Numbered from the stretch's first letter, positions 1-62,608 are shown. The stretch: DNA of 64,000 bases from Zygnema circumcarinatum SAG 698-1b (GCA_037447605.1 CM074805.1:744001-808000), one strand, 5' to 3'. The notes: generated by a model from the sequence alone, not told the origin. Numbers and translations: made by a program.

Positions 1-774
1 GCCGTTTGCTAAGGACCGGTTGGCAGGCCATCCAGCGCCTGAATGGCTAAATGCTTCACACATGTCCACCGACCTATGGATATTGGAACAGTTATCAACA
101 AAGTCTTGATTAAACCGTGAGGGCACATCATACATGTAGACATACTTCCCTGCACACTCTGCCGAGGGAAGGGGCAGGGTGATAGGCTCAATAACGGCGG
201 CACCCACGTTGTAATCCTCTTCATTCTCAGCTTCAAGTGGTTCAGTCTGTGGAACAGGCAATTCCGCACTCGCATTCAGCGATGCCTCCCATTGTTGCAT
301 AACCAAATCTGCTTCAAATCCCTGTCTTTCTCCTTCTGTTCCTCCTTTTTCGCCTCCCCTTTTTCCTCCTGCCCCCCCTACTCCTTCAGTGTAAGCTTTT
401 CCACCTTGTTTTCTCATTCTTTTGCCTTCTTCACCCATCATCTCCGCGATTACTGCGCCCTGCAATACCTGCACTGTTCTTCGCTCCTTTCGTTCAACAA
501 TCGCCCCCGAAGCCATAAGTTCCTCCAGCAAATTAGACCTTCCATCCGTAAGTCTCGGAGTATCAGTTTTCAGTTGAATGCTGAAGCCACTGGTTATCTC
601 ATTGCTTGCTCCATAACGGAACTGGAAGTAACTCGGCGCTGACAACCACGACTGTACGCCGAAAAGTAAAGCCACAACACAGAGGAGGAAGACGGGCAAT
701 ACCCGACATCGCCGACCAGTTGCTCTCCGTTTTCCAAGCGCCAGATCCAGCATAAACTTTCGCACCCGCATCAT
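1..774 (-). CDS. GT47 exostosin-family glycosyltransferase, MUR3/KATAMARI1-like clade; 3' end runs out of the window
   Basis: Open frame from ATG 774 to base 1, absent from the ORF track because it has no stop. Contains a type II TM segment (VLPVFLLCVVALLFGV), a long stem, then ECAGKYVYMYDVPSRFNQDFVDNC...DMCEAFSHSG, the typical N-terminal motif of the GT47 catalytic domain. Confidence 0.8.
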   Translation of the reverse strand, partial: MMRVRKFMLDLALGKRRATGRRCRVLPVFLLCVVALLFGVQSWLSAPSYFQFRYGASNEITSGFSIQLKTDTPRLTDGRSNLLEELMASGAIVERKERRTVQVLQGAVIAEMMGEEGKRMRKQGGKAYTEGVGGAGGKRGGEKGGTEGERQGFEADLVMQQWEASLNASAELPVPQTEPLEAENEEDYNVGAAVIEPITLPLPSAECAGKYVYMYDVPSRFNQDFVDNCSNIHRSVDMCEAFSHSGAGWPANRSLANG

Positions 775-1837: not shown

Positions 1838-3959
1838 TCAAGTGACCGGCCGTTGTTCCCCTCTGCATTGGAGACATTGCTCTCGGAGCCAATTTGCAGC
1901 TTCAAACTCTTTCGTAAAGAGCTGAGCGGGCTCAGACAACCCAACAGGGACATTCTCTTGGGCCTATGCATTGTTGAGGCATGGGTTCCCTTGGGTTGAC
2001 GTCCCCTGCATGACCACCTGCATGACCACCTGCTTGCCTCTCATCATAAATGTCTTTGACAAAAGAGTAAGCAATAATCTTTTTGAGTTCAATTTGGTAT
2101 GGTCTCTTGCATTAAGAAGGAAATAAAATGTAATTACTGCATATGACTGTGAAAGGGAATTTGTACCTGATCAGCTTGTTCAAGCCGCAGTACTACTTCC
2201 GACGGCAGGACGGCTTTGCCAGTTTGCTTCATCCGTTCTGCAACATGGGCGACCTGCTTGCGGGCCTCTTCCATCCCTCCCTCGTTCACAGCCTGATCAA
2301 TGAGCAATTCCCAAATCTTGAGCACCACCTTTTGGTTCTTGCCGTCGTCATCATCCTTGATGATCCTATTCCAGATCGCATAGTGTAGAATTTCCAAACA
2401 AATCTGCATATCACAGAACCATATGGCCTCCCATGGACGGAAGCAGGAAGTTCGCTTAGAAGTACGCTCAGTGTCAGCCTAACAATGACCTATTTCAGAG
2501 ACATGCTACAGAACAACTCATTCAGAGAGATTCTTGCAAAACCACAGAATAGCCGATGTGAACTCACCGCCCATAGGCCAAACGGCATCACATAGTTATC
2601 ATATAGCGCCTGAAGAGTCTGCATGTTATTCTTCAACTCCTCAATCTTCTGGCGAATTGGTTCACCGCCCGGTCTGAAGTAAGTCCATGCAACAAGTAGC
2701 ACACCAGCAAAATGGTCTCAGATACCCATTCTAACAACCACTTCTGCTGACAGTTTGTTCATTTAGATTCTAAATCCTCTGCTCGCTATCTTAGACCACC
2801 GTGTTTTTTTCCTACTCAAAAGGAAATGGCTGTTTTCTTGTCGTATGCATAACTGAGGCAGACGAACATTAGAAAACACTGTCAATTTGACTTTTCAACG
2901 TAGGCTAGACTTGCCTCCAGAATGAAGCATACATACTAGAGGCGTGGTTCAAACAACAACATGGGGGCAATTTCACTTACTTGGCACTCAATCGTTCTAA
3001 CTCCTCGCATATGGAATTTTGGAAGCGGAGAAATCGAAGCTTTTTACGAAGAAGCCGCAGAAAGTCTGGAACGCTGTCCACTCGCTTCAGGCGGAACGAC
3101 CTGTCCTGCACGTCCCGTTGATCTGAAAACATCGCTTGAAGAACAGCATCGGCCAAATAGTTCTGCCTGCACGCATTTTCAACACAGTCACGCTTCACTC
3201 AACCCAACCACATGCTACATAGTGCAACCCAACATTCACGTAACGCAATAGCGCATCATCAGCTTTACCTCTGTTCGAGGGAAATGCCGCCTGGCTGGGT
3301 ATGTCCACCTTCTGGCTGACTCAGCTCGGCAAGCTGCAAATAGACATGAGCTGCCGAGAAACCCTTGTGACGGTCGACATAACACTTGGCAGTAAGCTCC
3401 AAATGCTTTCTTTGCTCTGCAAGAATGGTGGCCTGCCGGCCAGGGAGCTGGATGGAAGATACACGAAGTTCTGACTGAGCAAGTCCTGCAGAACTTGTAG
3501 ACCCTGCAAATCCGAATCCAGGGGTGGCAGCAGACCCGAACATGGATCCCCCAAAAGCTGGTGTGCTTGCAGAGCCAGCAGGCGGGGAAGCCCCAAATGT
3601 GGGCTGCTGCTGCTGCGGAGCGCTATCTCCGAATCCAAACAGGGACGGCGTTACAGTGTTTGCATTTGGCTGACCGAACATCGATGAAGTGCCGAAGGGA
3701 GAGGCCGAAGAAGCCCCTTTTGCTGTTTGGAGAAAATAAATTAATGTCAAAATATGAAGGTTGATTAGGTCAAGGGCAAGAAAACTGTTCGAAATTTACA
3801 TTGAGTTGAGTCTTATTGAACACATTCACAAGGTCTGTGCACTGCTTCAAAACCCTAGAAATGCAATAAAGCAACAGCAGCAGCAGCAGGGAAAATGGAG
3901 AGAACGGAGACAAGGAAAGGCGCAAGGAGGAGGAAGTTACGAGAGCTCGCTCCAGACAT
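1838..3959 (-). CDS. Truncated Nup155-like protein (about 375 aa): FG-rich N-terminus plus Nup155 C-terminal domain
   Basis: Six GT-AG exons in phase: 3941-3959, 3269-3722, 2981-3166, 2568-2673, 2167-2403, 1838-1963. KHLELTAKCY..SAAHVYLQLAE, QNYLADAVLQA, LLRKKLRFLRFQ, LYDNYVMPFGLWAICLEILHYA and WELLIDQAVNEGG match the Nup155/Nup170 C-terminus. First and last exons are less certain. Confidence 0.75.
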
Positions 3960-4464: not shown

Positions 4465-4769
4465 AACGAACGAAAGAAAGAAAGAAAGAAAGAAAAAAGT
4501 AGATGGACATGCCAACATGCGCAATGCACACTCATCCGCCCCACAACGCCGACAGATCGTGGCAAAGCGCAGCATGGTATAGCCCAGCCATGGACTTTCC
4601 AGCCGAAAAATGATGCCATCTGACCCATCCTGCATGCACGCATGCACCAAGAAGCGCAAGATCAAGGATGTACGGCAACGACAGAAGTGGCGTGATTTGA
4701 GTGGAGGGATTCGAACCCTCAACATTCGGTTAACAAAACCGTTGCTCTACCAGATGAGCTTCACTCATC
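4465..4769 (-). mobile_element. Candidate tRNA-derived SINE
   Basis: tRNA-like head (4696-4768), about 200 bp body, TTTTT followed by a (TTTC)n/(TTCG)n tail; flanked by the direct repeat TTCAAG at 4459-4464 and 4770-4775. Confidence 0.45.
4696..4768 (-). pseudogene. Degenerate tRNA-like sequence (Thr-UGU-like)
   Basis: Minus strand reads ATGAGTGAAGCTCATCTGGTAGAGCAACGGTTTTGTTAACCGAATGTTGAGGGTTCGAATCCCTCCACTCAAA. D arm GCTC/GAGC, T arm GAGGG-TTCGAAT-CCCTC and a 6/7 acceptor stem are present. A at position 8, a pyrimidine at 37 and mismatched stem ends argue against function. Confidence 0.7.
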
Positions 4770-19247: not shown

Positions 19248-19715
19248 TCATTCAACTTTAACACCAATGCAGATAAAAAGATAGCGATAATGTAAAAAGC
19301 ATATGTAAAAATAAGAGCGGCTGAGATTTGAAGATTGTGGAGTGGAAGGATATGTTGGATTCTTAGCACACTGAACAGATCCACAGTTCGGGCCAATCAT
19401 TGTATGATTGCATCGACAATCATTGGCAACCATAGGCAATCCAAGGTTGCAACCACTAGCAATGGCTGGTTGGGATGCGAACCAATTGCTCCCAACCTGT
19501 CCAATGGTTGATCCAATGGTAGGATTTTGGCATGCTCTGACGTCTGGAGGATCTGAACACAAGCGAGAAGTACTTGCAGTCATACATTTCCTATAATCTG
19601 CTATACAACGACAATCCCTGTGTTTAAAAAATCCGACTTTGTACAAAACCCCGTAACATTGGCTTACGAGATACCCAATAACAACAAAATACTTCAGAAG
19701 AATGGTTTCATTCAT
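19248..19715 (-). CDS. Putative secreted cysteine-rich protein (155 aa)
   Basis: Hydrophobic N-terminus (LLKYFVVIGYLVSQCYG), two DCRC-x-C-x-C modules, S/P-rich spacer and aromatic-hydrophobic C-terminus. Overlaps the stop codon of the upstream gene. Confidence 0.4.
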   Translation of the reverse strand: MNETILLKYFVVIGYLVSQCYGVLYKVGFFKHRDCRCIADYRKCMTASTSRLCSDPPDVRACQNPTIGSTIGQVGSNWFASQPAIASGCNLGLPMVANDCRCNHTMIGPNCGSVQCAKNPTYPSTPQSSNLSRSYFYICFLHYRYLFICIGVKVE

Positions 19716-22700
19716 GAAAGACTTCAATATGGCGGTTTACGTCCCGCTCACTGTGAAGGCCAAGGCCGCATATTGGACATGATACTCGACAGCTTTTCGG
19801 AAGCGTGTCCCCGCCCATATGCGAAACAATGTCCTCCCCTTCTGCAGACGCCTTTCCTTCCTGAAGTCGAGAGTCTTCCCTAACCTCTGCAGCTCCGTCG
19901 CCATGGATTGAAGACGTTTGATGCAACTGATGCTGTTGAGCTGAAGCATGGGCATGCACAGCCGCCATATGCAGATCGACTTCCTTCAACATGATGGGCT
20001 TCCTGCACACTTCGCATGGAGCGGTTCTTGAGCCGCATTCGCTCTCATGTTGAGTCAGTCCATGGAGACGGTCTCGAGGATTCACTGCCTCCCCTCGGGC
20101 GTGCACAGACCCTCCACAAAATTTGCAGAGGATTATTCGTAGAGGACACGTGTCAGTTCGGTGCTTCACCTGCAAGGAAGGAGTCCAACAGCTACCGTTA
20201 TTCTCAGTAATGACAGAGTGATGAGCACACATCCGCTGTCTCAAACTCTGACTTCCCCAAATCCTCCACACCTTGAACTGAATTTCCTAAACTCGCAAGA
20301 AAACCCTAAAAGCCCTAAATCTGCGTAGAGAAAATCCCGCAATAGTCACCTTTGCCTACTCTGCCGGACTCAAAAGGTAAAGAGCTTAGAGAGAACTGAC
20401 GCCTGCTATGTCTCAGTAACGCTTCACAACTATTTACACTACTCTACTGTCTATTGTCTATTCAGCTCTAATGAAGCCATAGCTTACCATGGCCTCCATC
20501 TCCATCACAGCCCCACACTCGCACTTTAGAGCTGCGTGGATGACAGTTTCATGTTTTCTGAGCTCCGCCGCCTTCATCGCCTCTCCGCACCTTCCGCAAT
20601 GGACATGATTTGCTCTTTCCTCTTTCCTCAAAACTGCACCGCATGATGGGAAGTCGCAAGTAACATTATGTCGTCGGCAGTACGCTTCATGCAACAATAG
20701 CGTTCTCTGTGGAACAAACTGCTTGCAGTTCCCGCATTGTTCAATGTCTGCAACCCCCTCTGTCAGAGTTCTCTTCTCAATTGCCCCACCCAGAAGCACG
20801 CCTCGACTTGCGCTCTCTTTCCTGTTTTTAGCATCCACTGAGACCTTAAATTTGGAAGATCCTCGAAAGCCATACACTCCCAAACTGTACTGGACTGCTC
20901 CCTTAAACTTTGAGCCATCCTGGGCAGACAAGACGATAACTTTAGTGCCCACATCATGAGATGACCACTGATGCTGATGCTGTGTAGGATAGAGAATAGG
21001 CTGTGAAGCTAAATACAAGTCTGCATCGGCTTCATCCCTAACGCTAGTGGACCCTTCTCCTTTCCAACCACCCATCTCCAACGTCACTAAGATGTCCATC
21101 TCAGCAGACACTACAGCTTTTGCCAAACTCTCATCCACAAAGAACTTGTAGTAGCGATACTTCCCCTCCTCTACTAGTCCTTCCTGTGCTTTCCCGAATG
21201 TGAGCGGGACAATGACTCTCGACTCGTTTGCTTTACTCTCCGTTGCAGGGGCCACATCTACCTCCAAATCTGTCTCAATCAACGAAACAGAAAGCTCAGG
21301 CTTCAGCTCCAACACTTTGAGCCGATACTCCAAACCTCCATATTCTAAGGCCAAAGTATCACCTACTGTCAGAGTTGAGTGATTGCGAAGCTTCGCTTCC
21401 AGAATAGCTTTGTGATTCTGAAGCTCGGCAAAGTCAAGAGTGTCTGGTTGGAGCTTTGCGAATTCTCCTCTAGGAAGTCTGATGTAGCGAATATGTACTT
21501 TTGAAGGTGGACCTGCTTTCTCTCCCCTGCTGTTCATTCCTAAGTTCAACCAGACATGATGTGGAAGCCCAACAAAGCCCTCCTCTGCACTGAACTCAAG
21601 AACACCTCCATGTGTGACTTTTCTCCTAATGCCAAGGTCCTCCGTGGAGGTCAACAATTGTCTTTGGGCCATTACATCAACGGATGAAGAAGGCCTATCC
21701 TGAATTCTGTTCCCTTCGTTCTCTTTAAAACTTCCTGCTTCCGACTGTTCCATATCTTCATCAATCGATCCGCTATCGCTGTCGACACTGATCTCAAAAA
21801 ACATCGGGCCCTTATCAAGGGCATGTTGGGACTCCAGCTCTGCCAAGGCTGATGCTGGAAGGGCAATTTTATCGCCTTTTTCAAGTGTTAATTGCGGGAC
21901 TAATTGTACATGGAACCGTATACCACCGCCTGCACTGATTTCCGCCTCTTCCTGGAGGAGAGCCTGGACATCACCCAAACAAGAAATCACATGAATGATC
22001 AAACCATACTACGGAAAGCAAGCGGGGAGTTACCATTACACTCTCTCCCTTCCGCCATTATTCTTTGTTCGGAAAAGGTATCGGTTATGTTGTTACAGGT
22101 GGAAAAGTTACGTACACTCAGCAAAGGTCAACCTTACGCCACACCAGAAAACCTACAACGAATTAAAACTGTTTCAACAAGGACGCACGGAGGCCAAGGG
22201 ACGGGCCAATGCCTTGAACTATGCACGATACAAAACTTTGAATAATAAAGGACATCACACACATACTGGAGAGATTTCATATCGTGTAAAAAACTGCGTA
22301 TAATCGCTACATTACGAATTAAAGGAATAAAGTGCCTCCCAGTTTGAAGCTCTAACTCTCCTTCTCATAAATACTTTCTCAATACGACACCAGGCGGTAC
22401 TGCATTTAAAGGACTACGTTCATCTCCTTATTTATTGGAAAGACCATAACAGAAGGCGAATTGGCGTAAAATGCACATGCTGTAATAGTTTCCAAAGGTC
22501 CATCTTAAGCTCGACACTGAACGTGATGGAAAGTGCCAAGACATATGTGGGGTGCAACCGATCGGTGCGAATTCATAGGTTCCTGACAAGCTGGCATGAT
22601 TACCGCTATTCTACGAGAGGAAAACATGAATATAGAACACAAAGAGAATACGAAAGTTGTTCCAAACGTGTTTACTCACTGCCTAGTCTCTTCACACGCA

Positions 22701-44275: not shown

Positions 44276-44535
44276 GGGCCTTGTGTCAATGTAGGTGGTT
44301 GGTTCTGCAGGTATTGGGATTCGTTATTCTTGGTCGGGATAAGTCGTTATGGTTAAAGCTTGAGAGCTGAGGGTGAGCTGAGGGTTTCGGTGTCTTTCGC
44401 AACCATTGCCTGTCATTTGTGATTATCATTGTGCCGTTTTTTTTTTTTTTTTTTTTATGAATGAAAATAAGCCGCAGCCATAGTTGAGGAAGTTGAAGAA
44501 AGCTGGACCATGAAAGCGGACCCTAACAGGCTTCC

Positions 44536-47500
44536 CTAGAGATTGACGGAACGGAGACGCGCAAATGAAAGGCACCCTAAATCATGAGCCCATGATCCAA
44601 TTTTCAAATTCCACTGTTGGGCTCTGCATTTTCCAGCCACTGCCACTTCCGGAAAAGTCTGGGTCCGGCTTCGTCTGGCCTCAAAATTCGTGTAGATCAG
44701 TCTATTTCATGTAAACCCCGAAAACAATTTCGGACTCCGCATCCATTATTCATAATGACCAGGCTCTTATAGTTATTTCTACTGATTCAAGAAGATGCTC
44801 CAGTTCTAGTATTCGCTGAGATGGTTCAAGCCACAACAGCCTTCGTGAGCGATTTTTCGTAGCGTTTTGTTAGAACCCTGTAGGAAGAATTTATTTTCAT
44901 CATGTATACCTCCACGTGTATAATGCTTTTCCTTTTGGTGCTGAAAAGTTGGTTGATCTCTCTGCCAGAGTCGACCAATGTACAAAGGAGAGATAATACG
45001 CATTGTCATCACGTGATAACAGTCTCGCGGGGAAGCTAAAATGTGTGACTCCAAGCTATATCTCCACCAAACCGCACTGAAGAAGCACCACCGTGCATAA
45101 CCAATGAAAATTACACACGCATGGAAGTGCAATTTTCGTGAATTATTTCCACTAGTCATAGGCTACACATGACTAAGTACCTGCCCTCAACCCTTGGAGC
45201 ATACCATGAACCCTAATCGCCACCATACCTCACCAAAAGACCCAGCTACTAACATAAAGAGAAGCGCCCATCTCGTCATGTATGGTCTTAGTAATCACCC
45301 ACTCCTACACTCACAAACTATCACTCCAAAACACCCCCAAAGAGGCAAGAAGAGCACACCCTCTTTATTCTCAACCTCGACATTAGCATCTAGGCTTTAT
45401 TTTTTTTCCCGAGGTTTGCTCCCGAGGTTAGCACGGCGATCGATCTCCGAGTTGGAGATATTCCTCCATGCATCGCAGCAGGGCAATGAGGGGGCCGAGA
45501 TAAGCGATAATCACGAAGCCTGTTGGGTTGTCAACCACCTTCAAGGTCCAGGAACTGCATTACGAGAACACCATATTAGCTAAAAAAAGTGTCTGAAAGA
45601 ACGGAATTTCAATCTGCGACACTTTAAGACTGATGTCAGTTCTTTTCTTTGAGTTTGTGTTGACTCGAATAAATTTGTAGGTTGGATTAATTGAACAATG
45701 GTAGAACTTGGAGTCAGTACTGCTCACAAGTCCCATTGCAGTCAAAAGAGAGAAGAATGTGAAGCACATTCAAACTAGAAGTGGAATAGACAACAGGATC
45801 AGCTTACCTGACCGATAAATTAAAATTTGCTATGACATGAACTCATCACTAGTGTAAACTTGACTTGTAAGTCTCTGCTACAAAGTGCAGTCATCCAATA
45901 TCCCACTTTTCACACACACCCCGAACTTCACCTCCTCCCCCACTCATTTGAATTCGACATCCATTCAAAGCAGCCACCATGCTGTACCAATTGATCCCTT
46001 TCCATCCATAGTCAGAAGTGCAAAAGTAGTGCACCCTCCGTACCTGGCCAGCTGCTCTGAAAATCCCATGTCAGAATGTCCTGTGCTTCTGATGCTCCCC
46101 CTGTTGAAGCAGTAAATCCGATAAATGCGGTATTCAAATCCTTGCATGCAGCACCGCAACCCGCCGGTTGCAGAATGTTGCAGAGCGCTGCGCTGTGTGT
46201 GAGCAATGGCTGTGACGGTTTAAGGTCGCCATCGTTGAGATATACACTCCACGACCCCAAAGCTCCATCATATTCGACCCATGCAAACTTCACACCAGAA
46301 TAGTTGCCGAGAATGTTCGTCGTTTCAGTCTTGATGACGCGTCTGTTTAGGTTTTCACGTATACCCACATTGGGGATGATAGCTGGCTCACCAAGTAAGG
46401 GATTTGGCCAAGTATCAAAACTAATTGCTGTACTGCCCACTGACCCCGCCGTCAAGTTGTACGAATATGCAAGATTTCCGCCTGTTTTTCGGCCGAAATA
46501 ACTTAGAACTGCATTTGGAGTGAGGAGAACGAATGTGATACCGTCGGCACCGCTTACATTGCCGGCGGAAAGTCGGAAAGAGAATTTGGTGGTGAAGGAA
46601 GCTGCCTGACATGCTCCATTCGCATCGTATTGTAAAAGTTCGATCGGACTTTCATAGAATGCAACTCCCGTAAGATACTTCCAATTATAGGTCAGTCGCA
46701 GCCTCCCAGTGAGGAGCTCTGCTGAATACTGACGGATTACTCCACTTGTGGACTGAAAACTCGAAAAGGAGAAACTGGCGGGAGTGCTAAGAGCTGCACA
46801 TTGCACAAGGAGAGGTCGTCAAGAATGTGAATCCATCTCGAAGAGATGCAGATCTAAGTTCGTATCGAATGCCATACGTTCAAAATATGCGAGAAACTGC
46901 CCTAAAAGCGACTCAAATCACTTAATTCTCAAACAATCTGAAAAAACTGAGGAAAAAAGGGGTACGTACGGAGCTTGCGGAAACTTGAGACGTTGAGCGG
47001 CTGCCAATATTGCCTCGATGTGAAATTCCCGCAGTTGTACTGCTGTAAAGGAGTTCCAGGATATGCATTTTCCGAACTCAAGCACAAGCCTGATTCTACA
47101 TTCTCCCACTGTACAGCAGAATCTGAAGATCGTATATTCCGGGCGACAAACGTCTGATTTGGTCCATAATGGCAATCTGCAAACCATTTCAACCTCAAAG
47201 AAAACCTTAAAACTTGAAGTAATCAGACCTTGAAGTGCCAATCAGCTGCTCAATCTGCAGCTGCAATGAGGCTTGGCATACTTTGTGGTCCTAAGACTTA
47301 CATTAACTTCACTATGCAAATCCTTCACTCCACTTTCTTAGCAGTTACGACGGTATGGCACTTTTTAACGCCTATAACATATGTATAGATGATGCCGGAT
47401 CCCAAAACCCTAGGCCATAGGGAGCTATATGTAGAACAAGTGGTTTTCTCCCATATATTATGGGAGTGAGGAACTCTCGCTCATTGAGCAGACGCAATCG

Positions 47501-50500
47501 ACTCTAGTTGTCAGGCAGGCTGACTTACCTGAAAGTAAGAGGGGACCGCTGGGAAGGTCAGGACTTAATTGAAAGCATTTGTTTCCCTGTGCTTGTTTAA
47601 AAACATATCCGCGTGTTTCGGCTAATTGAAGCACCCACAGGCCCCGCGTGTTGCTGCTTGTACCTGCAATTCCAATGCAAAGGGCACGTGATTGTGTCTA
47701 CTGACAAACGAAAAATCGTGCTGGAGAAGAGAGCAGAGAGGTCTGTCGAGAGTTTGAGGGCAAAGCAATGGACCAAACCCAAGAGAGAAAGTAATGAGAG
47801 CTCTACTTAGGTACAAAATAGCACTGTTTAACATCCATGAAAAAGTTCAATTTGCGAGAGCATCTCAGCCTCCGAATCCTCCCAAACATCCAGCTAAAAA
47901 AACGTGCCTGCTCGCAGAAATCATACCATGAAATCCCACCCATGTTCGAACTTTGAAACCTTAAAAGTGAGACTTAACCCCAACAAGCACCCGATTACTC
48001 CTTCCCATGCATGCATCCCTCATGCATCCCTCATGCATCCCCCATGCATCCCCCATGCATCCCCCATGCATCCCTCATGCATCCCTCATGCATCGCTCAT
48101 GCATCCCTCATGCATCCCTCATGCATCCCTCATGCATCCCTCATGCATCGCTCATGCATCCCTCATGCATCCCTCATGCATCCCCCATGCATCCCCCATG
48201 CATCGCTCATGCATCCCTCATGCATCCCTCATGCATCGCTCATGCATCCCCCATGCATCGCTCATGCATCCCTCATGCATCCCTCATGCATGCACATGCA
48301 TCGCTCATGCATCCCTCATGCATCCATCATGCATCCCTCATGCATCCCTCATGCATCGCTCATGCATCCCTCATGCATGCACATGCATGTCCATGCATGG
48401 CCCCCGCCCCGGCCGCCGGCCCTCACCGCTCTTCCGCACGTAGAGCGCCTTCCCGGGGTCGCTCGCCCTATCGCCGGCGGCGCGGAGAGCGGCCTTCGTC
48501 GCGCACGCAAGGGTCCCGCCGGCGGCCGTTGGCGCGCTAACGACAAAACCGACGCAGTCGCAGTCGGCCGTACAGAGGCGCTGGCACTCCACTACTGACG
48601 TCACGGCGCTCGTTGACTCGTCAAAACCGGCCGAGTCGGTGCCGGGGAAGCGCTCGTATTGGTCGAGACGGCCGTCGCACGTGTGAAAATCTGCAGAGTG
48701 ACGTGAGCAAAATGAGAACGGAAGCAGAGTTCCCAGTATTCCGCTCCGTTAACACTGTTCCATCCCGATCTGTCTCGTCTCGTTCCGTTCCGATCCGTTA
48801 AGCCCCCGTTCAACTGTCATGACAAGCGTAAACGGCACTGCGCGCCAAACGGCCCCTTTCGAACGTGATCGCACATAGAACGCCCTACGTGTCCGTTCAA
48901 CTGTACGGAACGTCAGTGACCATTCACGCTAGAACTGGCACATGGAACTGTGTGTCACGGAATGACCCTGAACCGGCTGTCGGCAGTCACTCGCTGGCCC
49001 CTTCAAACCCTGCGATCTGAAACCCTTCAAAGCAGAGGCCGGGGAGGACAAAGGCATTGGCTGAGCTCACCTTCCGAAAGTCGAATGTCAACCTCATTTG
49101 CATCGGCCATGAGGGCGGTGTGCGACCAGGTGGGCTGCATGAGGAAGCCTCCCGAGGCCGAGAGGGACAGCCATGGGAACACTGGAGAGGAGGACATAGG
49201 TAAAACATTGCAGCTTTGAGTGATGAACAACGTGATGGATATTAGGGAGCTTTTGTTACTGCTAGAATTGTAACGTGCAGTTAGAGCTGCAATCATCGTG
49301 GCTATCAATGTGTTGTGAAAGAGCTGCAGAGTCCTTTGTAGACTGCCATACAAACAACCCCGGATTGCCTCAGCTGCGATCAGCTTCATTCCACAACGGA
49401 ATCAGGTTTGGTATCTCACAAGATGAGGTGGTGGACAGCTTGAAGCACCACTTTCCGGGAACGTTGACATTCGATTCGAGGGGCAGATTTGAAATTCTTG
49501 TCGATGACAAGAGGTTCAATCCAGCCTCTTGGTTACTTGTGAAATACCCTACAACGTTCGCGGAAGCTGCATCCCTCCACGCACAGTCAAGAGGATGGTG
49601 GATCATTACGTCTCGCTTTCAGCCTCTCTTTGCTAGCAGTAATAAGGGCCATTTAATCGGGTCAAATACATTATGAAAAAGTTCATTTCTGGCAGCTCAA
49701 TGTCATTAAAGACGACTGCAGCAAACAGGGAAAGGAAACTGAGAAACCTCCAGTTCATTGATTACAAATCCGGCCGTTAAAAAAAAAAACTCTTCGACTG
49801 AGGTTAGAAGTTCAATAACCATGAACAAACATCAAAGAAATAAAACTTTCAGTTTCAGAGTTTCAGAAAACATTAAAGAAACATTTTGAAGATCGATGAC
49901 CGAAGTTAAGAGTAGCTGACCTCTCTGTATGCCACCTTTAGGGTACAGAAAGCATGTGTAGGTCTGCGGAGAGTATCCCGACGAGCTCCATACGACCCAC
50001 GCTTGAAAAGTGTTTTTCAGATCGGTTTTTCGCCTGCAAGAACGAACACATGCAATGGTGATGATAAATCCTTGAAAACACAGAAACATTTTTGACAACC
50101 GCTGTTGGACGAAACAAAAGTCGTTGCAAGGAGTTGCTTTTACTTTTTCGCTCTTGAGCTCTCGCTCACATCCGCCCATGCAACATTGCAAACACGGAGA
50201 TCAATTGTCACAGTTCCTGGGCATAAGAAAGGTTGGTGGACATGCACAAAGGGTCATGTGTTCATGTGGCAGGTATGTTGAATGGGCAGTAGACCATGAC
50301 CATACCATGACCATAAACCCATAGACCCATGAAGACCATGACCCATGTAGACCTATGTGCCACTATTTCCTCTCAAGACCTGTTCACTATGTCATACTAC
50401 TCTAACCTTCCAGCGCTCGACCTCGAACAGCGAAACGAACAGCGAAAGGCCAACAACAACATGATGAGAAACTTTCAATAGGGATTGTGCTCACGGGTAA

Positions 50501-52316
50501 TATCCAATGTTGATGTAGGACACCACCAGCCCTCCATCCGGCCGGAAGTTTTGAGCTTCAGGATCGGAGGGAAACAAGGTCTTCACTTCTTGGGCGAGAA
50601 GGGAGAGGTCCCCCGGTTTGTTCGTCGGGCTCACTGTTCTGTAATATACGCCTCCAGAAGACTGGCTGGTAGTGTCTGGGAGAAGGCAAGCGAGGAGTAC
50701 ATTGGAAGACAAAGACAAGATGAGAGAGAGAAAAATTTATGAAAAGGAAGAAGAGTGAAGAGAAGAAAGAAGAGAGAAAGAGTGGCTGTTGTTTGAGAAG
50801 AGGACGATGAAACATTGGTAAAAGAGAGAATCTCCTCACCAACATCATATTGAAACGGTGCGATGTAGGAAAAAGAAGGTGTTGGCCCACTCCTGCACAC
50901 AGAGCATCTCCAATAGCATTATAATGGCAAAACCTAGGCAATCTTCTAAGTTAAAAAGGCATCTCAAGAACTGTTTCCCATTTAGAAAAATGAGAAACGG
51001 AAGGGAAAATCAGAGAGGAAGAAAGAACAGAAAAAGAGAGTTCGATAGACAGAGGGTAGTACGGGAGGATGGCAGGAAAGAAAAGAAAGAAGTGGAGGGT
51101 GGGAGTAGGAAAGGAAGAAAAAGAGATGGAGAGAAAGATTGTGGGCGAGGGAGATAGCACCAACGAATGCGCGTGAATATGGTGATGAGATCAAGCGACA
51201 GAGAAGGAGGGACGGAGCAAGGTGGTGTATGAAAGAATTGGAAGTACAAAAAATCGACGAGAGAATAACAATTCAAAGGTATTATGGAGTAGACAAGCAT
51301 CGCCAAAAACATAAGGAACTTCAAATAAATCAAAAAAAGGAAAAAAGGAAAGCAGATAGTGCAAGGAGAGACGAGAAAGAGAGGGGGAGCAGAAAGAGGA
51401 GGAGTGGGGGAAGAGCGTTAGCCTGTGATTCCTGTACACTAAACAAAGAGAGGAGGGAGGTGAGAGAATGTAAGGGAGAGAGAAAGAGAGAGAGAGAGAT
51501 GACGCACAAGTAATACTGGCTGCCAACAGACGGAAAACCAAAATAGCCGTTGTTTGAGACCCCGAACGTTGTGAACTTAGTGCTGAAGAAGGACATGGGC
51601 GAGGGCAGCGCCACAGGGCTCGCGTAGCAGTCGTCGCAGAAAAACAGCTTCGCGTCTCCGGCTCCGGGGCCGTACGGAAACAGAGAAAATGAAGGAGTGG
51701 GGGCGGGCGCCGCCAACACGCGAGGGGTCACCACCTCAAGCTCCCTCCTCTTTGAAGCCTTCTCAGCCATCTCCTTCAGATAGGCGTGTGCGTATTCCTC
51801 CAGCTTCTCTGGAACGAGAAAGCCATTGATGGAGTGCACCACACCATCCTCTGCTTTCAAAACTCCGACTTCCTTAACCACCGCATCGTTGACCTTGAGC
51901 TTCCCCCCTTCAATGTAAAGCTTCGCATCGCCATCCGCGAATGTTTTCAGAGTCTCGCCGGCCTTCCAAGACTCGGAGGTGAGCTTCCCTCGGACGATGT
52001 GGTTCAGAAGCACCTCTCGGAGGAGCTTGTCATTGCTCGGCTCCTCCAGGAAGGAGAGGAGAGAGGGAGAGACCCTCTCCGTCAGGTACTCGTTAGTGGG
52101 AGCGAAGATCGTGACTCCCACAAAGATCTCGTCCGACTCGACGTCCCCGAGCAGGTCCGCCTCCTCGAGCAGGTTCATGAACATGGTGAAGTTGGACCCC
52201 AGCAGCTGCACCAGGAAGGACTCCTCCTGCTTCTGCTCGCCCGCCTGCACGCCGCTCCAGCACCCTCCCGCCATCACCAAACAAAGGGCGAATGCGATCG
52301 CCATGCGAGCCGCCAT
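44536..52316 (-). CDS. Secreted mosaic protein: signal peptide-FAS1-NIDO-PAN/apple-ricin B lectin-legume (L-type) lectin; over 920 aa, 3' end uncertain
   Basis: Ten GT-AG exons chain with matching phases: 51517-52316, 50840-50892, 50495-50675, 49921-50033, 49420-49566, 49071-49181, 48427-48690, 47529-47663, 46970-47176, 46044-46793. Motifs: TIFAPTN/NHIV/DGVVHSIN (FAS1); IAPFQYDVD..GGVYYR, NTFQA, SNVNVPGKWCFKL (NIDO); ECQRLCTADCDCVGF (PAN); SGLCLS..QQYNC..QYW (ricin); SFTTKFSF..GADGITF..FDT..IGFTASTG (L-lectin). Exons below 46044 are tentative. Confidence 0.85.
48006..48398. repeat. Intronic 11 bp minisatellite (CATGCATCCCT)n
   Basis: About 35 head-to-tail units with variants CATGCATCCCC and CATGCATCGCT, inside intron 47664-48426 of the mosaic gene. 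Confidence 0.95.
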
Positions 52317-54156
52317 TGCTGTCCCTCTCCCTCTCCTTCTCCCTCTCCCTCTCACCCCCTCTCACTCCCTCTCCCCTCTCCCTCTCCTTCTCCCTCTCCC
52401 TCTCCCCTCCTCTCTCTCCCTCTCCCCTTTCCCTCTCCTTCTGCTCCTCCCACTCCCCCTCTCCCTCTCCCTTTCTCGCTTGCTCCCTCGCCCTCTCCCT
52501 CTCCTTATACCTTTCACTCTCCCTCTCTCTCCCACTCACTCTCAAGGCAGGACCAGCGGAGTCGCCGGTCAGCAATTTTCTTTGGCATTTTTTGGGCATC
52601 TTTTTTAGACCATTTTTTGGCATTCGTTAGACGTTTCTGATTGGCTCCCACTGCTGACTTGTTCCTCCATACTCGCTGCGGATTGGCCGGAAACAACATC
52701 TTCTAAAAATGGAAATATTTGTGCACCGACATAAGGAAACGATTCAAATTCACATAGCGACGGGTCAGTTGATGATCTGTACGGACATTGCCGTACTCAT
52801 TTGCCCCGTCAGCGGCGGGAGGATTTCCGCTGCAAAACGACAAGTTACGGCTACAGTCCGTACCTCTCTGTACTTTTCTTAATACATTTTAAGATATTTT
52901 TGACAAACAATATTACTCGACGATGATTTGTGGAAAAAGTCCTGAGAGCATTTAAGAAATATTTTCTCCGACACGATTCGCCGGGCAACGGGAAATGTTT
53001 CTTCGCCGACAAAGGAAACGGCCAAATATGACACACCGCCAATGAAAGGTCGCCACGCGTCCATATTGAACCGTACGGATGACTGCGACATAAAGTCAAC
53101 AGAGTACGGTAGACCAGTGGAGAGAACAGTGAAACGAGGAAACGCCAAACAGTCACCTGGACCGGATCTGTACGAACGGTATGGACAAATGTACGAATAG
53201 ATCGAACGGATGGTACGCAAGGACAAAACAGCTACGGACAAATCGAACGGTGGGAATGTCGCTTCAAGGAGTAATGGTACAAAATGTTGACTTGTTCTGC
53301 GCTCGCATGGCTCAACTTTCCTTCAACTTGTTTCGACGGGTTGAAGTTCAACCGTGCAAACGCGCCAGCCGGTTGGATGCCGGAGGGCCGCCGCAAACCG
53401 CCACACTAGCTATCGCCACACAGAAAAGTACCACGTGGCGTCCACGTGGCACCACTGAAACATCAACGAACGAATGCTATCGTGCTCGAGGCTGCCCGCA
53501 AAAGGTTTGACTGCCCGAGGCGTTGAGAGCTAGTTTGGTAATTTGAATTTCATTAGTACCCAGTCTGAGTCTCTGCCTTCTTAGGGTGCGCGTTCATGTT
53601 CCAACTTCGTACATTTAGTTGAACGTTCCAAGAACCCCCAAATCTACAATTCGACCTTCTACGCCGCATGCAATAATGGTAAACTTTACAATGCACAGAG
53701 CCTTTGCATTGCCTTTGTTTTGGCCTAGGCGTAGCTTTCCGCTCCTACCTTTTTTCTTTGGTCCTTCGGTCCTTCGCGACCAGTTCCTCGTGGTTCCCCA
53801 TGCTGATTTTGTGCATGTACATTTGATGGCATCACCGCCATCGTGAGACCAATGCCATTTCCATTCATGGTTTTACAAACACTATGGAGCTGCATCCTTG
53901 GGTCCTGGCGACCTGCAGGGACTGAAGCCCGCCTGACAGTGACCCATGCCGATGCGGGCCATGGCCATGTCTATGGCCATGGTCCCATGTCGTCCCGGTC
54001 CCCTCCCTCTCCTCGGCGCGCGCAGGCCCCAATCGCGCGTCGCCTTTTCGCACGTGCGAGCGCGCGCGGCGAAACGACACTTTGCTTTTGACGCGAGCCA
54101 AGGTTCGCGCGCGTCACGTGACACCCACTCCGTATTGTACCGTATACTTAGGAAAG

Positions 54157-58870: not shown

Positions 58871-61800
58871 TGTTGTTGCAGCGCCCTCCCTTGGTGGGGC
58901 TGCCACTTCTCCTCTAGCACTTGTAGAACTCGACATCTTCAATGAATTGATCAATCACACAAAGCACACTAAATGCAAGAGAACAACTCAGCGGAAATAT
59001 GAAAATGTAAGGAGAAAGCCACCAGCCTAAAAATCCTTAAGATAAAGTTGAAATACAACTTGACAACACTAGAGCCAAGCTTCAAGCACCTCCACTCAAG
59101 CTACGTGAATAAACCACCCACTACAAGCTGAACTCTTCCCACTATCTCCTTGGCCCTAAGCAAGATAGCCTCACCCTGATGTGAGTCACGAGAAGGTTAA
59201 CTTCTACCAAACAATCTAACCCTTAAATACAATATGGCGCCATTAGTGACATTGTCACGTCACGGCCGCACATGCTACGCCTTGCAAGACCCTTATCCCG
59301 ATCCTAATCTCGCGCCGTCGGATCCTCGTAGGCTTGCACGGATCCAGCACATCATTGCCGTCAGATCCGCCTCAGCCTTATCTCCATCCGAGTCCTCCAC
59401 CGTAGGATCTGACTCCTCATTACTTGGCGGCATGTGGGACCCCGTAAGCCTACGAGCGCCACCGACCTAGGCCGTACAGGCCTTCCCTTTAACCCGACAC
59501 GTGGCGCCTTCCGATTCGCCACTGTCCTCCAAATGAATCATTGCTGACTTCGCACTTCGTCAATTCTGCTCCGCGCGCTGATTCGCGCCTCGTCACGTCC
59601 CGATTTGTCGCGTCGTGCCACGTCACATCTGACTCCGCCACGCCGCGCCTCGCCACCGACCAATGTCCGTACATTCGAGGTCCTGGCCTTACAAATCGTA
59701 CCACTGATTGGCTCCACCGACATTCTGATGCCTTGCCTTGCCAAATCAGACTCTGCGCGCTACACGCACACCCCTTAAAGACTTGTACGGTCGCCTAGAC
59801 GCCCCTCCGTACAATGTGGACAACATGAGCACACCCCTCCTTAGAACTTAGTACCAACAACTTAGTGTACAACTAGTTCCTAACTACTTTACACTAACAA
59901 TCCCCCTCTTGGTACTTAGTTCCCCATGGGCCCTAGTTGCATGAGACCACTACAATTCCCTAGTGTCCCACAACTACATGTATGCTCCCTTGCCCTAACA
60001 AGCTGCCCCCTCTTGATCTCAAGGCCTGGGAGAGCATCTTCCCCTTCTTGATCTCCCCTTGGTCGCCTTTCACACTCGATCCTGGGCGCTTCCGCTGAAC
60101 TCCTCATAGGCTCAGCAACCGGGTATTCCTTTGTAGCCGCAACCTTGTCCTCAGGCTGCTCAACTACCCTGGGTTGAAAGGACCCCTCCACTTCAACTCC
60201 ATCCTTGTTTGGATGCAACAAGCCCGTGTTTCCGGCCTCCTTGGAGCTCACTAACTCTGAGTGATCCTGGAATTCGCACACATTCTCACCACCACTAATG
60301 TCCACCCTTTCGGTGATGGGTCTTTCAACCCCCTTAGCCTGGCTATCTGAAATGTCGTTGGCGAAATAATCCCCTGCTCCCCTGAGCCTCAATGCTTGCT
60401 CTAGCATCCCCTTTCCTCCTCCAAGCTGGACTGGATCTATCTTATGGCGAATGGGTTCCTCTACAGGGTCCTTGGCGGGATTGCTCAGCCCTTGAGCCTC
60501 CTTCCACTCTAGAAAGTAAAGCCCACCTTGCTGGATTCCCTTGCACAAGACTTGCCTTGTCTCCTTGTGAATGACCTCACAACTACCCTTCTCAAACCAT
60601 ACTCCATTGTCCTTCTCACACAGCTGACTAACAGAGAGGAAACTAACCTGCAGTCGAGTATGCTACGTCACCAACATGGACAACCCTCAAGCTTTCCTTC
60701 CCCGACACCTCCAACTCTGCCGTCTGCGTCGTCACCAGACTCCACTCCAGCGCCAAGAGACTTGTTGGACTTCCTTTGGAAGCCCCTCCCTGCAAGAGCG
60801 GGTAGTCGTCCACCACAGTATGTGCCTTGAAGCACGGAATCAATCACCCAAGGTTTAGCTGAATTTTCAACTCTAACACATCCGACAAACTCATCATTAG
60901 GTTCCCAATCCGAGAACATCAAGTTCGTCTCGTGAATCCTCTTGCGTTCATCTCTGGGATACCTGCCATCACCCCTCCTCCCTTCTTGCTCGTTTAGAGC
61001 ATCTGCATTCGAGGATGAACCGCCATTCTGAACATTGGGGCAGTTCCTCTTGAAGTGACCGGTCTTCCCACAAGAGTAGCAAGTCCTCTGAGTCTTCAGC
61101 TCTCCACCATCTTTGGCTGCGTTTGGTCCCTTGCCGTTCCTGTATGGGCGAGCAGTTGCAGCATACAGTTTCTCTGAACTTGACCTGTACTGCTTCTTGT
61201 CCTGAAGACCATCCTCCTCTACCACTCTTCTCTTAACCTGCTCAAAGGTCATCTTAGTCGTAGAAAGCTGAGTTCGTAGAGCAGTGCAAGCAGGGTCAAA
61301 TCTATCCGGCAAGCCTCCAAGGAATAGACTAATCTTGTGATCCAAGTGAAGGGGCTGCTTCATCCCATCAAACTTTTGCATCAGATTATCAAACTTGATC
61401 ACATAGTCTTTAAGCTCCTCCCCTGAATCCAAACTGAGTTTTCCTAGCTCTGTGTACAGATAAACTATAGTGGCATTATCTACCACATCATAAATCTTCT
61501 CTAGAGTATCCCACATCTCCCGAGCTGTCTTTAACTCTGAAATCAGGTCTGTAGGCTCCTCACTAACGCCAGCACAAAGCAGGGTCCTAACCTTGCAATC
61601 CTTAACCCTCCACTTCTCAAACTCAAGTGGATTAATCTCTGAATCGGGGGCCACAATGGAGCCATTCACATACCCCAACAGCCGCTTGTTCTCCAGCACT
61701 GTGAGCATGCGAAACTTCCACCGCTTGTAGTTCTTCCCATCGAAAGTTGGAATGGTAAACTTCACGTCTTCTTCGCCTTCGGCTCTGATACCACTTGTTG

Positions 61801-62608
61801 TTGCAGCGCCCTCCCTTGGTGGGGCTGCCACTTCTCCTCTAGCACTTGTAGAACTCGACATCTTCAATGAATTGCTCAATCACACAAAGCACACTAAATG
61901 CAAGAGAACAACTCAGCGGAAATATGAAAATGTAAGGAGAAAGCCACCAGCCTAAAACTCCTTAAGATAAAGATGAAATACAACTTGACAACACTAGAGC
62001 CAAGCTTCAAGCACCTCCACTCAAGCTACGTGAATAAACCACCCACTACAAGCTGAACTCTTCCCACTATCTCCTTGGCCCTAAGCAAGATAGCCTCACC
62101 CTGATGTGAGTCACGAGAAGGTTAACTTCTACCAAACAATCTAACCCTTAAATACAATATGGCGCCAATAGTGACATTGTCACGTCACGGCCGCACATGC
62201 TACGCCTTGCAAGACCCTTATCCCGATCCTAATCTCGCGCCGTCGGATCCTCGTAGGCTTGCACGGATCCAGCACATTATTGCCGTCAGATCCGCCTCAG
62301 CCTTATCTCCATCCGAGTCCTCCACCGTAGGATCTGACTCCTCATTACTTGGCGGCATGTGGGACCCCGTAAGCCTACGAGCGCCACCGACCTAGGCCGT
62401 ACAGGCCTTCCCTTTAACCCGACACGTGGCGCCTTCCGATTCGCCACTGTCCTCCAAATGAATCATTGCTGACTTCGCACTTCGTCAATTCTGCTCCGCG
62501 CGCTGATTCGCGCCTCGTCACGTCCCGATTTGTCGCGTCGCGCCACGTCACATCTGACTCCGCCACGCCGCGCCTCGCCACCGACCAATGTCCGTACATT
62601 CGAGGTCC
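58871..62608 (-). mobile_element. Young, internally deleted Ty1/Copia LTR retrotransposon
   Basis: 3' LTR 58871-59899 (TG..CA); 5' LTR 61796 to beyond 62608 (gap). About 6 substitutions seen in about 810 aligned bp. PBS TGGTATCAGAGCC at 61781-61793 and PPT at 59901-59910. Internal region is only 1.9 kb. Confidence 0.95.
60668..61861 (-). CDS. Copia Gag with zinc knuckle, frameshifted in the protease
   Basis: IPTFDGKNYKRWKFRM, KTAREMWDTLEKIY, FLGGLPDRF, CYSCGKTGHFKRNC, then WVIDS followed by a 1 nt shift into GASRHI. Confidence 0.9.
   Translation of the reverse strand: MSSSTSARGEVAAPPREGAATTSGIRAEGEEDVKFTIPTFDGKNYKRWKFRMLTVLENKRLLGYVNGSIVAPDSEINPLEFEKWRVKDCKVRTLLCAGVSEEPTDLISELKTAREMWDTLEKIYDVVDNATIVYLYTELGKLSLDSGEELKDYVIKFDNLMQKFDGMKQPLHLDHKISLFLGGLPDRFDPACTALRTQLSTTKMTFEQVKRRVVEEDGLQDKKQYRSSSEKLYAATARPYRNGKGPNAAKDGGELKTQRTCYSCGKTGHFKRNCPNVQNGGSSSNADALNEQEGRRGDGRYPRDERKRIHETNLMFSDWEPNDEFVGCVRVENSAKPWVIDSVLQGTYCGGRLPALAGRGFQRKSNKSLGAGVESGDDADGRVGGVGEGKLEGCPCW

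Follow-up and report, generated by a model that had tools for sequence, protein, structure and literature searches.

Does the minus strand of a 64,000-nt window from Zygnema circumcarinatum SAG 698-1b (the whole stretch of DNA analysed here) carry separate fasciclin and lectin genes, or one gene for an extracellular mosaic protein, and what might such a protein do? Transcript contigs answer the first part. Positions 52316-45541 on the minus strand form one transcribed gene with 11 exons and 927 codons. A spliced contig of 3,582 nt from run X1 joins the fasciclin exon to the lectin exon via GT..AG introns, with 100% identity to the window (0 differing letters), so that the initial annotation was right to read both as one gene. 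Its joints are 46793|46970, 47176|47529, 47661|48425 (cut +2) and 48690|49071 in the 3' half, and 49181|49420, 49566|49921, 50032|50494 (cut +1) and 50675|50840 in the 5' half. All eight have CT..AC on the plus strand, corresponding to GT..AG on the minus strand, and the contig runs on into exon 1 at 51507/51508. The same eight joints and the same loose contig end at 46044 occur in run X2 of a second study. Based on local translation of the spliced exons, all introns (10/10) are GT-AG and the frame stays open through 927 codons. Seven runs from three studies have contigs of the transcript, with a high contig depth in each run holding the gene, although contig depth is unsuited to ranking expression.

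The gene ends required some correction. The initial annotation joined ten exons from 52316 to 46044 into 920 codons; the in-phase joining and the donor at 46044 hold, whereas the end of exon 1 and the 3' end do not. According to the transcript contig, the exon 1 donor in use is 51508|GT, and the earlier reading probably took another GT in phase, at 51516. The donor at 46044 is spliced to exon 11 at 45554: the loose ends of the X1 and X2 contigs match 45525-45554 exactly and an AG acceptor is present. The coding part of exon 11 completes a Val and adds Pro-Gly-Pro (V-P-G-P) before a TGA at 45543-45541. Transcript evidence thus confirms the joining of the exons. An unspliced end (...GTEGALLLHF*) at 46012 is a minor form, seen in an X2 contig that retains intron 10 at a depth of 30 versus 1,557. 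Positions 44437-45540 (minus strand) are probably an unspliced 3' UTR of about 1.1 kb, reaching up to a genomic A20 run (44437-44456), since the X1 contig has 1,120 nt past 46044 and 45554 minus 1,119 gives 44435, just beyond the A run. At the other end, the start codon is assigned from the ORF and the putative signal peptide, because transcript contig coverage does not reach the first 308 nt of the CDS (52009-52316). No paralogue was detected within the 64-kb window by tblastn with every exon. The coordinates of the exons and repeats are listed in Table 1. As a side observation, the minisatellite listed there gives rise to spurious ORFs of 177-195 aa on the plus strand.

Table 1. Exons, domain content and repeats of the mosaic gene (positions counted from the first letter of the window)
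Feature	Position	Strand	Content and evidence
CT-rich microsatellite, (TCCCTC)n / 51-nt	52322..52543	.	Tandem Repeats Finder; directly before the start codon, in the 5' UTR or promoter
Exon 1, aa 1-270	51508..52316	-	ATG at 52316; contig piece 51507-51699
Content of exon 1			Signal peptide ~aa 1-26; FAS1 ~aa 42-169 (51810-52193); AAPAPTPS linker; NIDO start ~aa 223
Exon 2, aa 270-288	50840..50892	-	NIDO part with IAPFQYDV; joint 50675|50840, AG/GT sites
Exon 3, aa 288-348	50495..50675	-	NIDO profile 41-92; transcript joints
Exon 4, aa 348-386	49921..50033	-	NIDO profile 98-126; transcript joints
Exon 5, aa 386-435	49420..49566	-	NIDO profile 144-185, NIDO end; symmetric 1-1; transcript joints
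Exon 6, aa 435-472	49071..49181	-	37-codon 1-1 spacer before PAN; joints 48690|49071, 49181|49420
Exon 7, aa 472-560	48427..48690	-	PAN/apple, six Cys; 1-1
11-nt minisatellite, (CATGCATCCCT)x33.6	48010..48378	.	In intron 7; transcript depth near zero
Exon 8, aa 560-605	47529..47663	-	Probable beta-trefoil lobe 1 and start of lobe 2; 1-1; transcript joints
Exon 9, aa 605-674	46970..47176	-	Ricin-B/CBM13-type beta-trefoil lobes; 1-1
Exon 10, aa 674-924	46044..46793	-	Whole legume (L-type) lectin domain, one 750-nt 1-1 exon; donor 46044 used
Exon 11, coding start	45541..45554	-	Contig loose-end match; AG acceptor

The encoded modules follow one another as signal peptide, FAS1, AP/TP linker, NIDO (exons 1-5), a 37-residue spacer, PAN/apple, a ricin-B/CBM13-type trefoil and an L-type lectin. 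Pfam scans were done exon by exon, and the domain limits rest on these exon pieces. In this way all five module types named in the initial annotation were recovered, with NIDO and ricin-B below the cut-off per exon. For the FAS1 part, Fasciclin (PF02469) matches exon 1 with 72.2 bits against a gathering score of 22, covering profile positions 2-123 of 123. Residues 3-207 of exon 1 are 52% identical to P0012, a protein of 407 aa with two FAS1 stretches, and this similarity breaks off where NIDO begins.

A hydropathy scan of the spliced protein identified a strongly hydrophobic 19-mer only at residues 1-23, the predicted signal peptide. The C-terminus (...SSWPVPGP) is hydrophilic and lacks a hydrophobic GPI-signal tail, and seven NxS/T sites are present. 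The product is therefore predicted to be a secreted, soluble protein of 927 residues, in line with the earlier proposal of a secreted protein that has neither a transmembrane segment nor a kinase. FLAs are defined by a signal peptide, FAS1 and AGP glycomodule regions, often with a C-terminal GPI signal. Here, signal peptide and FAS1 are present, the sole AP/TP stretch is the short AAPAPTPS and the GPI tail is absent. Judged by these sequence features, the protein as a whole is not an FLA, and its N-terminus is derived from an FLA-like protein.

NIDO (PF06119) is spread over several exons. It is the sole Pfam match of exons 3 (14.1 bits, E 0.049), 4 (20.8 bits, E 4.4e-4) and 5 (18.5 bits, E 2.1e-3), and the three profile segments are colinear; each piece scores below the gathering score of 25 bits and their simple sum is 53. 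A language-model search of the ESM Atlas with exon 3 alone found NIDO in 66 of the 100 nearest named clusters, with a best score of 0.92. The exon 1 tail and the neighbourhood of exon 2 have no Pfam match alone, in the case of exon 2 because it is too short, and exons 3 and 5 gave no match in PDB sequence searches. To our knowledge, no ligand of NIDO has been described in any organism. Exon 6 has no Pfam match and no recognisable domain. Exon 7 alone matches PAN_1 (PF00024) with 24.8 bits against a cut-off of 21.4; its cysteines lie at positions 476, 507, 511, 515, 517 and 534, and its best solved-structure matches are the apple domains of kallikrein and factor XI and the PAN domain of SRK9.

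For the trefoil, exon 9 reaches 22.1-23.5 bits for Ricin_B_lectin (PF00652), against a cut-off of 29, and 19.5 bits for RicinB_lectin_2. Its best solved match is the CBM13 of a Streptomyces xylanase (1knl, E 4.6e-5), whose three lobes all align to the exon 9 lobe, followed by ricin agglutinin B and GalNAc-T lectin domains. Exon 9 has a Cys636-Cys653 pair and one canonical QYW motif. Exon 8 alone gave no match in Pfam or in a PDB sequence search, and was placed in the trefoil because of the spacing between Cys589 and Cys606 and a QxW-like motif, NQTF, across the exon 8/9 junction. Together, these exons would form one putative trefoil of some 110 residues, with a degenerate first lobe and two Cys pairs, each with a spacing of 17 residues. 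A ricin-type toxin was considered and dropped. A type 2 RIP combines tandem ricin-B domains with an upstream A chain, an N-glycosidase; here there is a single trefoil, no A chain and no catalytic domain, and no exon or ORF piece scanned with Pfam matched the RIP family.

In exon 10, Lectin_legB (PF00139) scores 89.1 bits against 26.3 and spans profile positions 3-237 of 250 within one exon. Against solved structures, this exon matches 44 legume lectins at E < 1e-3, with 44.9 bits for PHA-E (3wcr), and its nearest Atlas clusters are all Lectin_legB. In the PHA-E alignment the sugar-contact Asp (ADG), the Asn and Ca-type ligands are retained. At the five positions that we take to be metal ligands, legume lectins have E, D, N, D and H where exon 10 has S, D, N, E and N, the two presumed Mn2+ ligands being changed from E to S and from H to N. 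With both Mn2+-ligand positions replaced, the L-type lectin module might not bind sugar, as is the case for many lectin receptor kinases. A receptor kinase or receptor-like protein was rejected as a reading of the gene: the ORF stops four residues past the lectin without a transmembrane segment, and none of the exons matches a kinase.

How such a gene came about is suggested by its introns. Introns 4-10 are all phase 1, and exons 5-10, each a multiple of three in length, have phase-1 introns on both sides. Symmetric 1-1 cassettes thus begin with the final NIDO exon and continue through the spacer, PAN and both trefoil exons to the lectin. In metazoan matrix genes, modules are bounded by phase-1 introns. 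The intron phases and the symmetry of the cassettes argue strongly that the gene was put together by exon shuffling. A fasciclin-like protein with two FAS1 domains would have supplied the N-terminal half, with signal peptide, first FAS1 and linker, and the cassettes would have been appended to it.

Relatives of the same build were also searched for. Among 1.84 billion cluster representatives queried with exon 1, no protein combined this FAS1 with other modules, which is weak evidence of absence as the set lacks the gene's own protein too; the closest single-FAS1 matches were FLA-like proteins of about 400 aa. A homologue search with exons 1 and 10 returned distant matches only, proteins of about 927 aa being outside its length range, and the best match of the lectin exon there was an L-type lectin of a bacterial MAG with 32% identity. 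One metagenome locus matching the lectin exon (28% identical, on a short contig with bacterial-looking ORFs) was dropped. The architecture, which the initial annotation did not recognise from land plants, therefore stayed without a relative of the same build in these searches. According to Feng et al. (2024; PMC11096116), NIDO, a module of animal glycoproteins, is present in filamentous Zygnema, 'absent in land plants' and missing in unicellular relatives. The same study reports 26 Lectin_legB domain combinations in filamentous Zygnema. As these observations were already published, the mosaic is less of a surprise. The genome itself also fits a streptophyte alga that is not a land plant. FAS1 of plants is almost confined to FLAs (PMC12820192). 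In the accessible parts of the text and supplements of PMC11096116, where the supplements hold no domain-combination lists, and of other papers, Fasciclin, NIDO, PAN, ricin-B and Lectin_legB were not found together.

Taken as a whole, we consider it somewhat probable that this transcribed 11-exon gene arose by exon shuffling and that its secreted mosaic protein acts as a multivalent matrix linker, with the function being the inferred part. Its modules suggest a role as a matrix glycan cross-linker or adhesin. The protein would be delivered to the wall or mucilage of this filamentous streptophyte alga. There, the trefoil and the L-type lectin, perhaps with PAN, may each bind a different glycan or glycoprotein, and FAS1 and NIDO may make contacts with the matrix or the cell surface. 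A multivalent linker of this kind could connect matrix polymers with each other or with the cell surface.

Other explanations were weighed against this one. Assembled contigs can in principle span neighbouring genes, and a FAS1-NIDO gene next to a PAN-ricin-lectin gene might have been joined by read-through, a chimeric contig or mis-assembly. However, the bridges across exons 5, 6 and 7 are true GT..AG splice joints in one open frame, recovered in two studies, and no stop or start signal lies between the two halves. The bridging joints have the same depth as the remainder of the contig (336 in X1), which does not differ from the genome by a single letter. An artefact is therefore largely refuted and highly improbable.

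The remaining alternatives accept the gene and differ in its role. The protein might be a soluble pattern-recognition or defence lectin that uses its three glycan-binding-type modules to recognise the surfaces of bacteria, fungi or oomycetes in the mucilage and agglutinates or flags them, in which case FAS1 and NIDO would merely anchor it in the sheath. We regard this as rather unlikely: signalling or effector parts are missing from the protein, and every run with the gene shows a high contig depth, though depth cannot rank expression. A recognition adhesin for sexual or cell-cell contacts, acting in filament pairing and conjugation tubes, would suit the multivalent, adhesion-type build, as well as the occurrence of NIDO in filamentous Zygnema and its lack in unicellular relatives (PMC11096116). 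Yet the seven runs with abundant contigs of this transcript more likely come from vegetative cultures, and the protein has no membrane anchor to keep it on one partner, making this role quite improbable.

Beyond the matrix linker reading itself, a broader idea can be put forward, which we think unlikely. The gene might belong to an exon-shuffled 'matrix toolkit' that is specific to the lineage of filamentous algae sister to land plants, in which phase-1 cassettes of NIDO, FAS1, PAN, trefoil and L-type lectin would be recombined much like metazoan matrix modules, and its protein might be a structural cross-linker required for filament cohesion or sheath organisation. If true, the green lineage would have evolved a modular extracellular matrix independently and by convergence, in connection with its multicellularity. 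The protein brings together FAS1, NIDO and three lectin-type modules in one strongly transcribed secreted product of an alga next to land plants. It is also a concrete candidate for work on the proteins of zygnematophyte walls and mucilage, which are still poorly known. The seven phase-1 introns around its modules offer a testable handle on how extracellular mosaics arise in this lineage, and raise the question whether the green lineage evolved metazoan-style shuffling for matrix proteins.

Compared with known systems, the gene resembles several in part. With FLAs (P0012, P0028, P0037 and P0039; 384-430 aa, two FAS1 stretches) it shares the signal peptide, a short linker (AAPAPT) and a FAS1 that carries TxFAPTN and VVHxIxGxLVP. 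In contrast to FLAs, it has one FAS1, with NIDO-PAN-trefoil-lectin in place of the second, and neither an extended AGP glycomodule nor a hydrophobic GPI-signal tail. Animal NIDO matrix proteins such as nidogen, alpha-tectorin, MUC4, SNED1 and SUSD2 likewise carry NIDO (PF06119) in a secreted, glycosylated, multi-module extracellular protein, and phase-1 introns bound the modules in both, as is well established for the animal genes. Here, however, the usual partner modules AMOP, vWD, EGF and G2/G3 are absent and the partners are plant/algal-type lectin modules of the green lineage. Land-plant L-type and G-type lectin receptor-like kinases have the same ectodomain module types (Lectin_legB and PAN/apple), whereas this protein has no transmembrane helix and no kinase. 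With the ricin-B/CBM13 trefoils of type 2 RIP B chains, xylanase CBM13 and GalNAc-T, it has the CLxx...C...QxW lobes and two Cys pairs in common, but it has just one trefoil (about 110 residues, lobe 1 degenerate) and no RIP A or catalytic domain. A further parallel comes from the lineage-specific Lectin_legB combinations and NIDO proteins of filamentous Zygnema (PMC11096116). In the accessible parts of that study this five-module combination was not found, and new here are the phase-1 1-1 cassettes and the likeness of the N-terminal 207 residues to a two-FAS1 FLA-like protein. Nevertheless, the phenomenon is the same: in an alga sister to land plants, L-type lectin and NIDO modules have been recombined with other extracellular ones. 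As NIDO presence and the many Lectin_legB combinations are already published, the gene is a good specimen of it rather than a new kind of system.

The studied gene comprises 11 exons on the minus strand (52316–45541), in a model that was built by hand from three-frame translation and the raw sequence and then checked against public runs. Seven such runs, from three studies and a single organism, hold the gene. In run X1, 0.40 of the sampled words are present, approximately the exonic share of the stretch. Contigs of X1 and of X2, a transcript run from another study, were compared with the window over 45700–51699. The X1 contig (3,582 nt) has zero mismatched letters to the window and skips eight intervals, every one ending in CT..AC on the plus strand, i.e. 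GT..AG for a minus-strand gene. Contig depth is in the hundreds or thousands over exons versus 0–35 over introns. The same eight joints are found in X2, such that the junctions, for which transcript evidence had been called for, are confirmed in two runs from separate studies. The ninth joint, between exons 1 and 2, was omitted from the joint table owing to a nearby repeat and was taken from record coordinates: since X1 record 3029–3080 corresponds to 50840–50891 and record 3081 to 51507, the exon 1 donor is 51508/GT and the acceptor AG/50892. All ten introns are canonical GT-AG once two ambiguous cuts are set to GT-AG.

Both X1 and X2 have a loose end at 46044, whose 30 letters have one exact match in the window, at 45525–45554; the donor at 46044 is therefore used and spliced to an 11th exon. 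The initial annotation had this donor right, but its ten exons and 920 codons become 11 exons and an open frame of 927 codons, with a C-terminus of ...SSWPVPGP followed by TGA at 45543–45541. The X1 contig reaches 1,120 nt past 46044. Counted from 45554, the same length ends slightly beyond a genomic A20 run, so the 3' UTR is likely unspliced and ~1.1 kb long. The A20 run, located exactly at the expected contig end if exon 11 is unspliced, could be a poly(A) site, or else an internal-priming or assembly stop. A low-depth X2 contig (45700–46073) keeps intron 10 at a depth of 30 versus 1,557; in this minor form the protein would end in ...WPGTEGALLLHF instead of ...WPVPGP. The X1 contig ends at ~52008, 308 nt short of the 5' end of the CDS, and we infer the start at ATG 52316 from the ORF, an in-frame stop at 52364–52362 and a signal-peptide-like N-terminus.

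Modules of the gene and further features of the window
Feature	Location	Strand	Remarks
Fasciclin (FAS1)	exon 1	-	72 bits, full profile
NIDO	exon 1 tail to exon 5	-	profile matches in exons 3, 4, 5
Spacer	exon 6	-	37 codons, no Pfam match
PAN/apple	exon 7	-	PAN_1 24.8 bits vs cut-off 21.4; six Cys
Ricin-B/CBM13 trefoil	exons 8-9	-	exon 9 22-23 bits, below cut-off 29
Legume lectin	exon 10	-	domain complete in one exon; 89 bits
tRNA gene	4696-4768	-	Rfam RF00005, 54 bits
Assembly gaps	~14440 and ~57250		short N runs (XXXX in ORF translations)
UFD1-like gene	19708-22002	-	zinc-finger/TRAF-like parts, 514-aa exon
A20 run	44437-44456	-	
11-nt minisatellite CATGCATCCCT	48010-48378, within intron 7		33.6 copies, 92% matches
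CT-rich hexamer/51-nt repeat	52322-52543		immediately upstream of start codon
403-aa ORF	60668-61879	-	CCHC zinc knuckle CYSCGKTGHFKRNCP, gag-like appearance

Family and structure searches were performed exon by exon, and the spliced model was translated solely for frame, length, hydropathy and simple motifs. All five module types named by the initial annotation (Fasciclin, NIDO, PAN, ricin-B and Lectin_legB) were recovered, with the ricin-B and single-exon NIDO scores below cut-off. The NIDO assignment is supported by profile matches: exons 3, 4 and 5 match this family only, at profile positions 41–92, 98–126 and 144–185 with 14.1, 20.8 and 18.5 bits, each below the 25-bit cut-off, but colinear and summing to 53 bits (exons scored singly). 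The first match names the family and the remaining two are tests of one pre-named profile. With exon 3 as the sole query, 66 of the 100 nearest clusters in a language-model search are NIDO (best score 0.92). Exon 2, too short for its own profile score, encodes IAPFQYDV, which we take to be the conserved PFxxD motif of the NIDO family. The best solved matches of exon 7 are the apple domains of kallikrein and factor XI and the PAN domain of SRK9. Exon 9 matches a Streptomyces xylanase CBM13 (E 4.6e-5), followed by ricin agglutinin B, ebulin and GalNAc-transferase lectin domains, and the trefoil model contains two Cys pairs with 17-residue spacing (589/606 and 636/653), one QYW and one NQTF. Since exon 8 alone has no match in the Pfam or PDB sequence search, the first trefoil lobe is, judging from the sequence, degenerate or absent. 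Exon 10 matched 44 solved legume lectins, and its Atlas neighbours are all Lectin_legB.

The predicted product is secreted and soluble, as the N-terminus is the sole strongly hydrophobic 19-residue window in a hydropathy scan of the spliced model. The second-best window is within PAN, below membrane-helix level; the spliced model has seven NxS/T sites and lacks a GPI-type tail. Neither a kinase nor a RIP A chain is matched by any exon, in agreement with the earlier description of a protein without kinase or clear TM segment.

The most useful new point is the run of phase-1 introns at the cassette borders, absent from the initial annotation, as is the FLA-like front half. Introns 4–10, seven in all, lie in phase 1 (chance of ~1e-4 under an assumed background of about a quarter phase 1), and exons 5–10 are each a multiple of three (147, 111, 264, 135, 207 and 750 nt). 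Because their flanking introns are in phase 1, PAN, the trefoil and the lectin are symmetric 1-1 cassettes, the classical exon-shuffling signature of metazoan extracellular proteins. The lectin cassette retains its 3' phase-1 donor though just three whole codons come after. An unrestricted search with exon 1 gave, as best single-domain matches, proteins of ~400 aa from transcriptome assemblies with Fasciclin only, in two stretches. One of these FLA-like proteins, P0012 (407 aa, two FAS1), is encoded by transcript contigs of Logan SRR8128902 and SRR8128904 and is the closest relative found for the N-terminal 207 residues. Identity is 52% over residues 3–207 (signal peptide, FAS1 and linker to AAPAPT). 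This likeness stops where NIDO begins, so the gene seems to combine the first half of an FLA-like gene with shuffled cassettes placed downstream of it.

Both repeats at the gene generate spurious ORFs. The minisatellite gives three overlapping ones on the plus strand (177–195 aa, HASLMHPSCIP repeats), which automated ORF calling would report as genes; the upstream repeat gives long ORFs on either strand, of Ser/Pro/Leu and Glu/Arg/Gly composition. Elsewhere in the window, the 403-aa ORF is probably a copia-type LTR retrotransposon fragment. Among named land-plant proteins, the best matches of the UFD1-like exon (mosses, lycophyte, Amborella, liverwort, ferns and conifer) share 43–46% identity with it, and nothing closer appeared, which is compatible with a genome from a streptophyte alga that is not an embryophyte.

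The set of domains suggests a multivalent linker outside the cell, in which FAS1 and NIDO are interaction modules for matrix or cell surface and PAN, trefoil and L-type lectin have folds of glycan-binding type. In an alignment to a solved legume lectin, the Asp of ADG and the Asn are retained, presumably as sugar contacts. What we take to be the five metal-ligand positions are S, D, N, E, N versus E, D, N, D, H in legume lectins. A Ca-type site may survive; the Mn site is probably lost, so the predicted sugar binding of this module is uncertain. A cross-linker or adhesin of wall or mucilage is the reading we favour, with moderate confidence. A soluble lectin for the recognition of microbes is an alternative that we regard as rather unlikely, and a role as conjugation adhesin appears improbable. 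An artefactual fusion of two genes is very hard to credit: the spliced X1 contig, with its joints repeated in X2, bears out one gene spanning FAS1 to lectin.

The initial observation is confirmed with small corrections, and its interpretation appears reasonable. According to Feng et al. (2024; PMC11096116), filamentous Zygnema has NIDO, which land plants lack, and Lectin_legB occurs there in 26 lineage-specific combinations. Neither the text of that paper nor the part of its supplements covered here names the present five-module build, and no other paper found does so; the class of protein is already published if the genome is Zygnema. The gene adds a variant to a pattern known from the algae that are sister to land plants.
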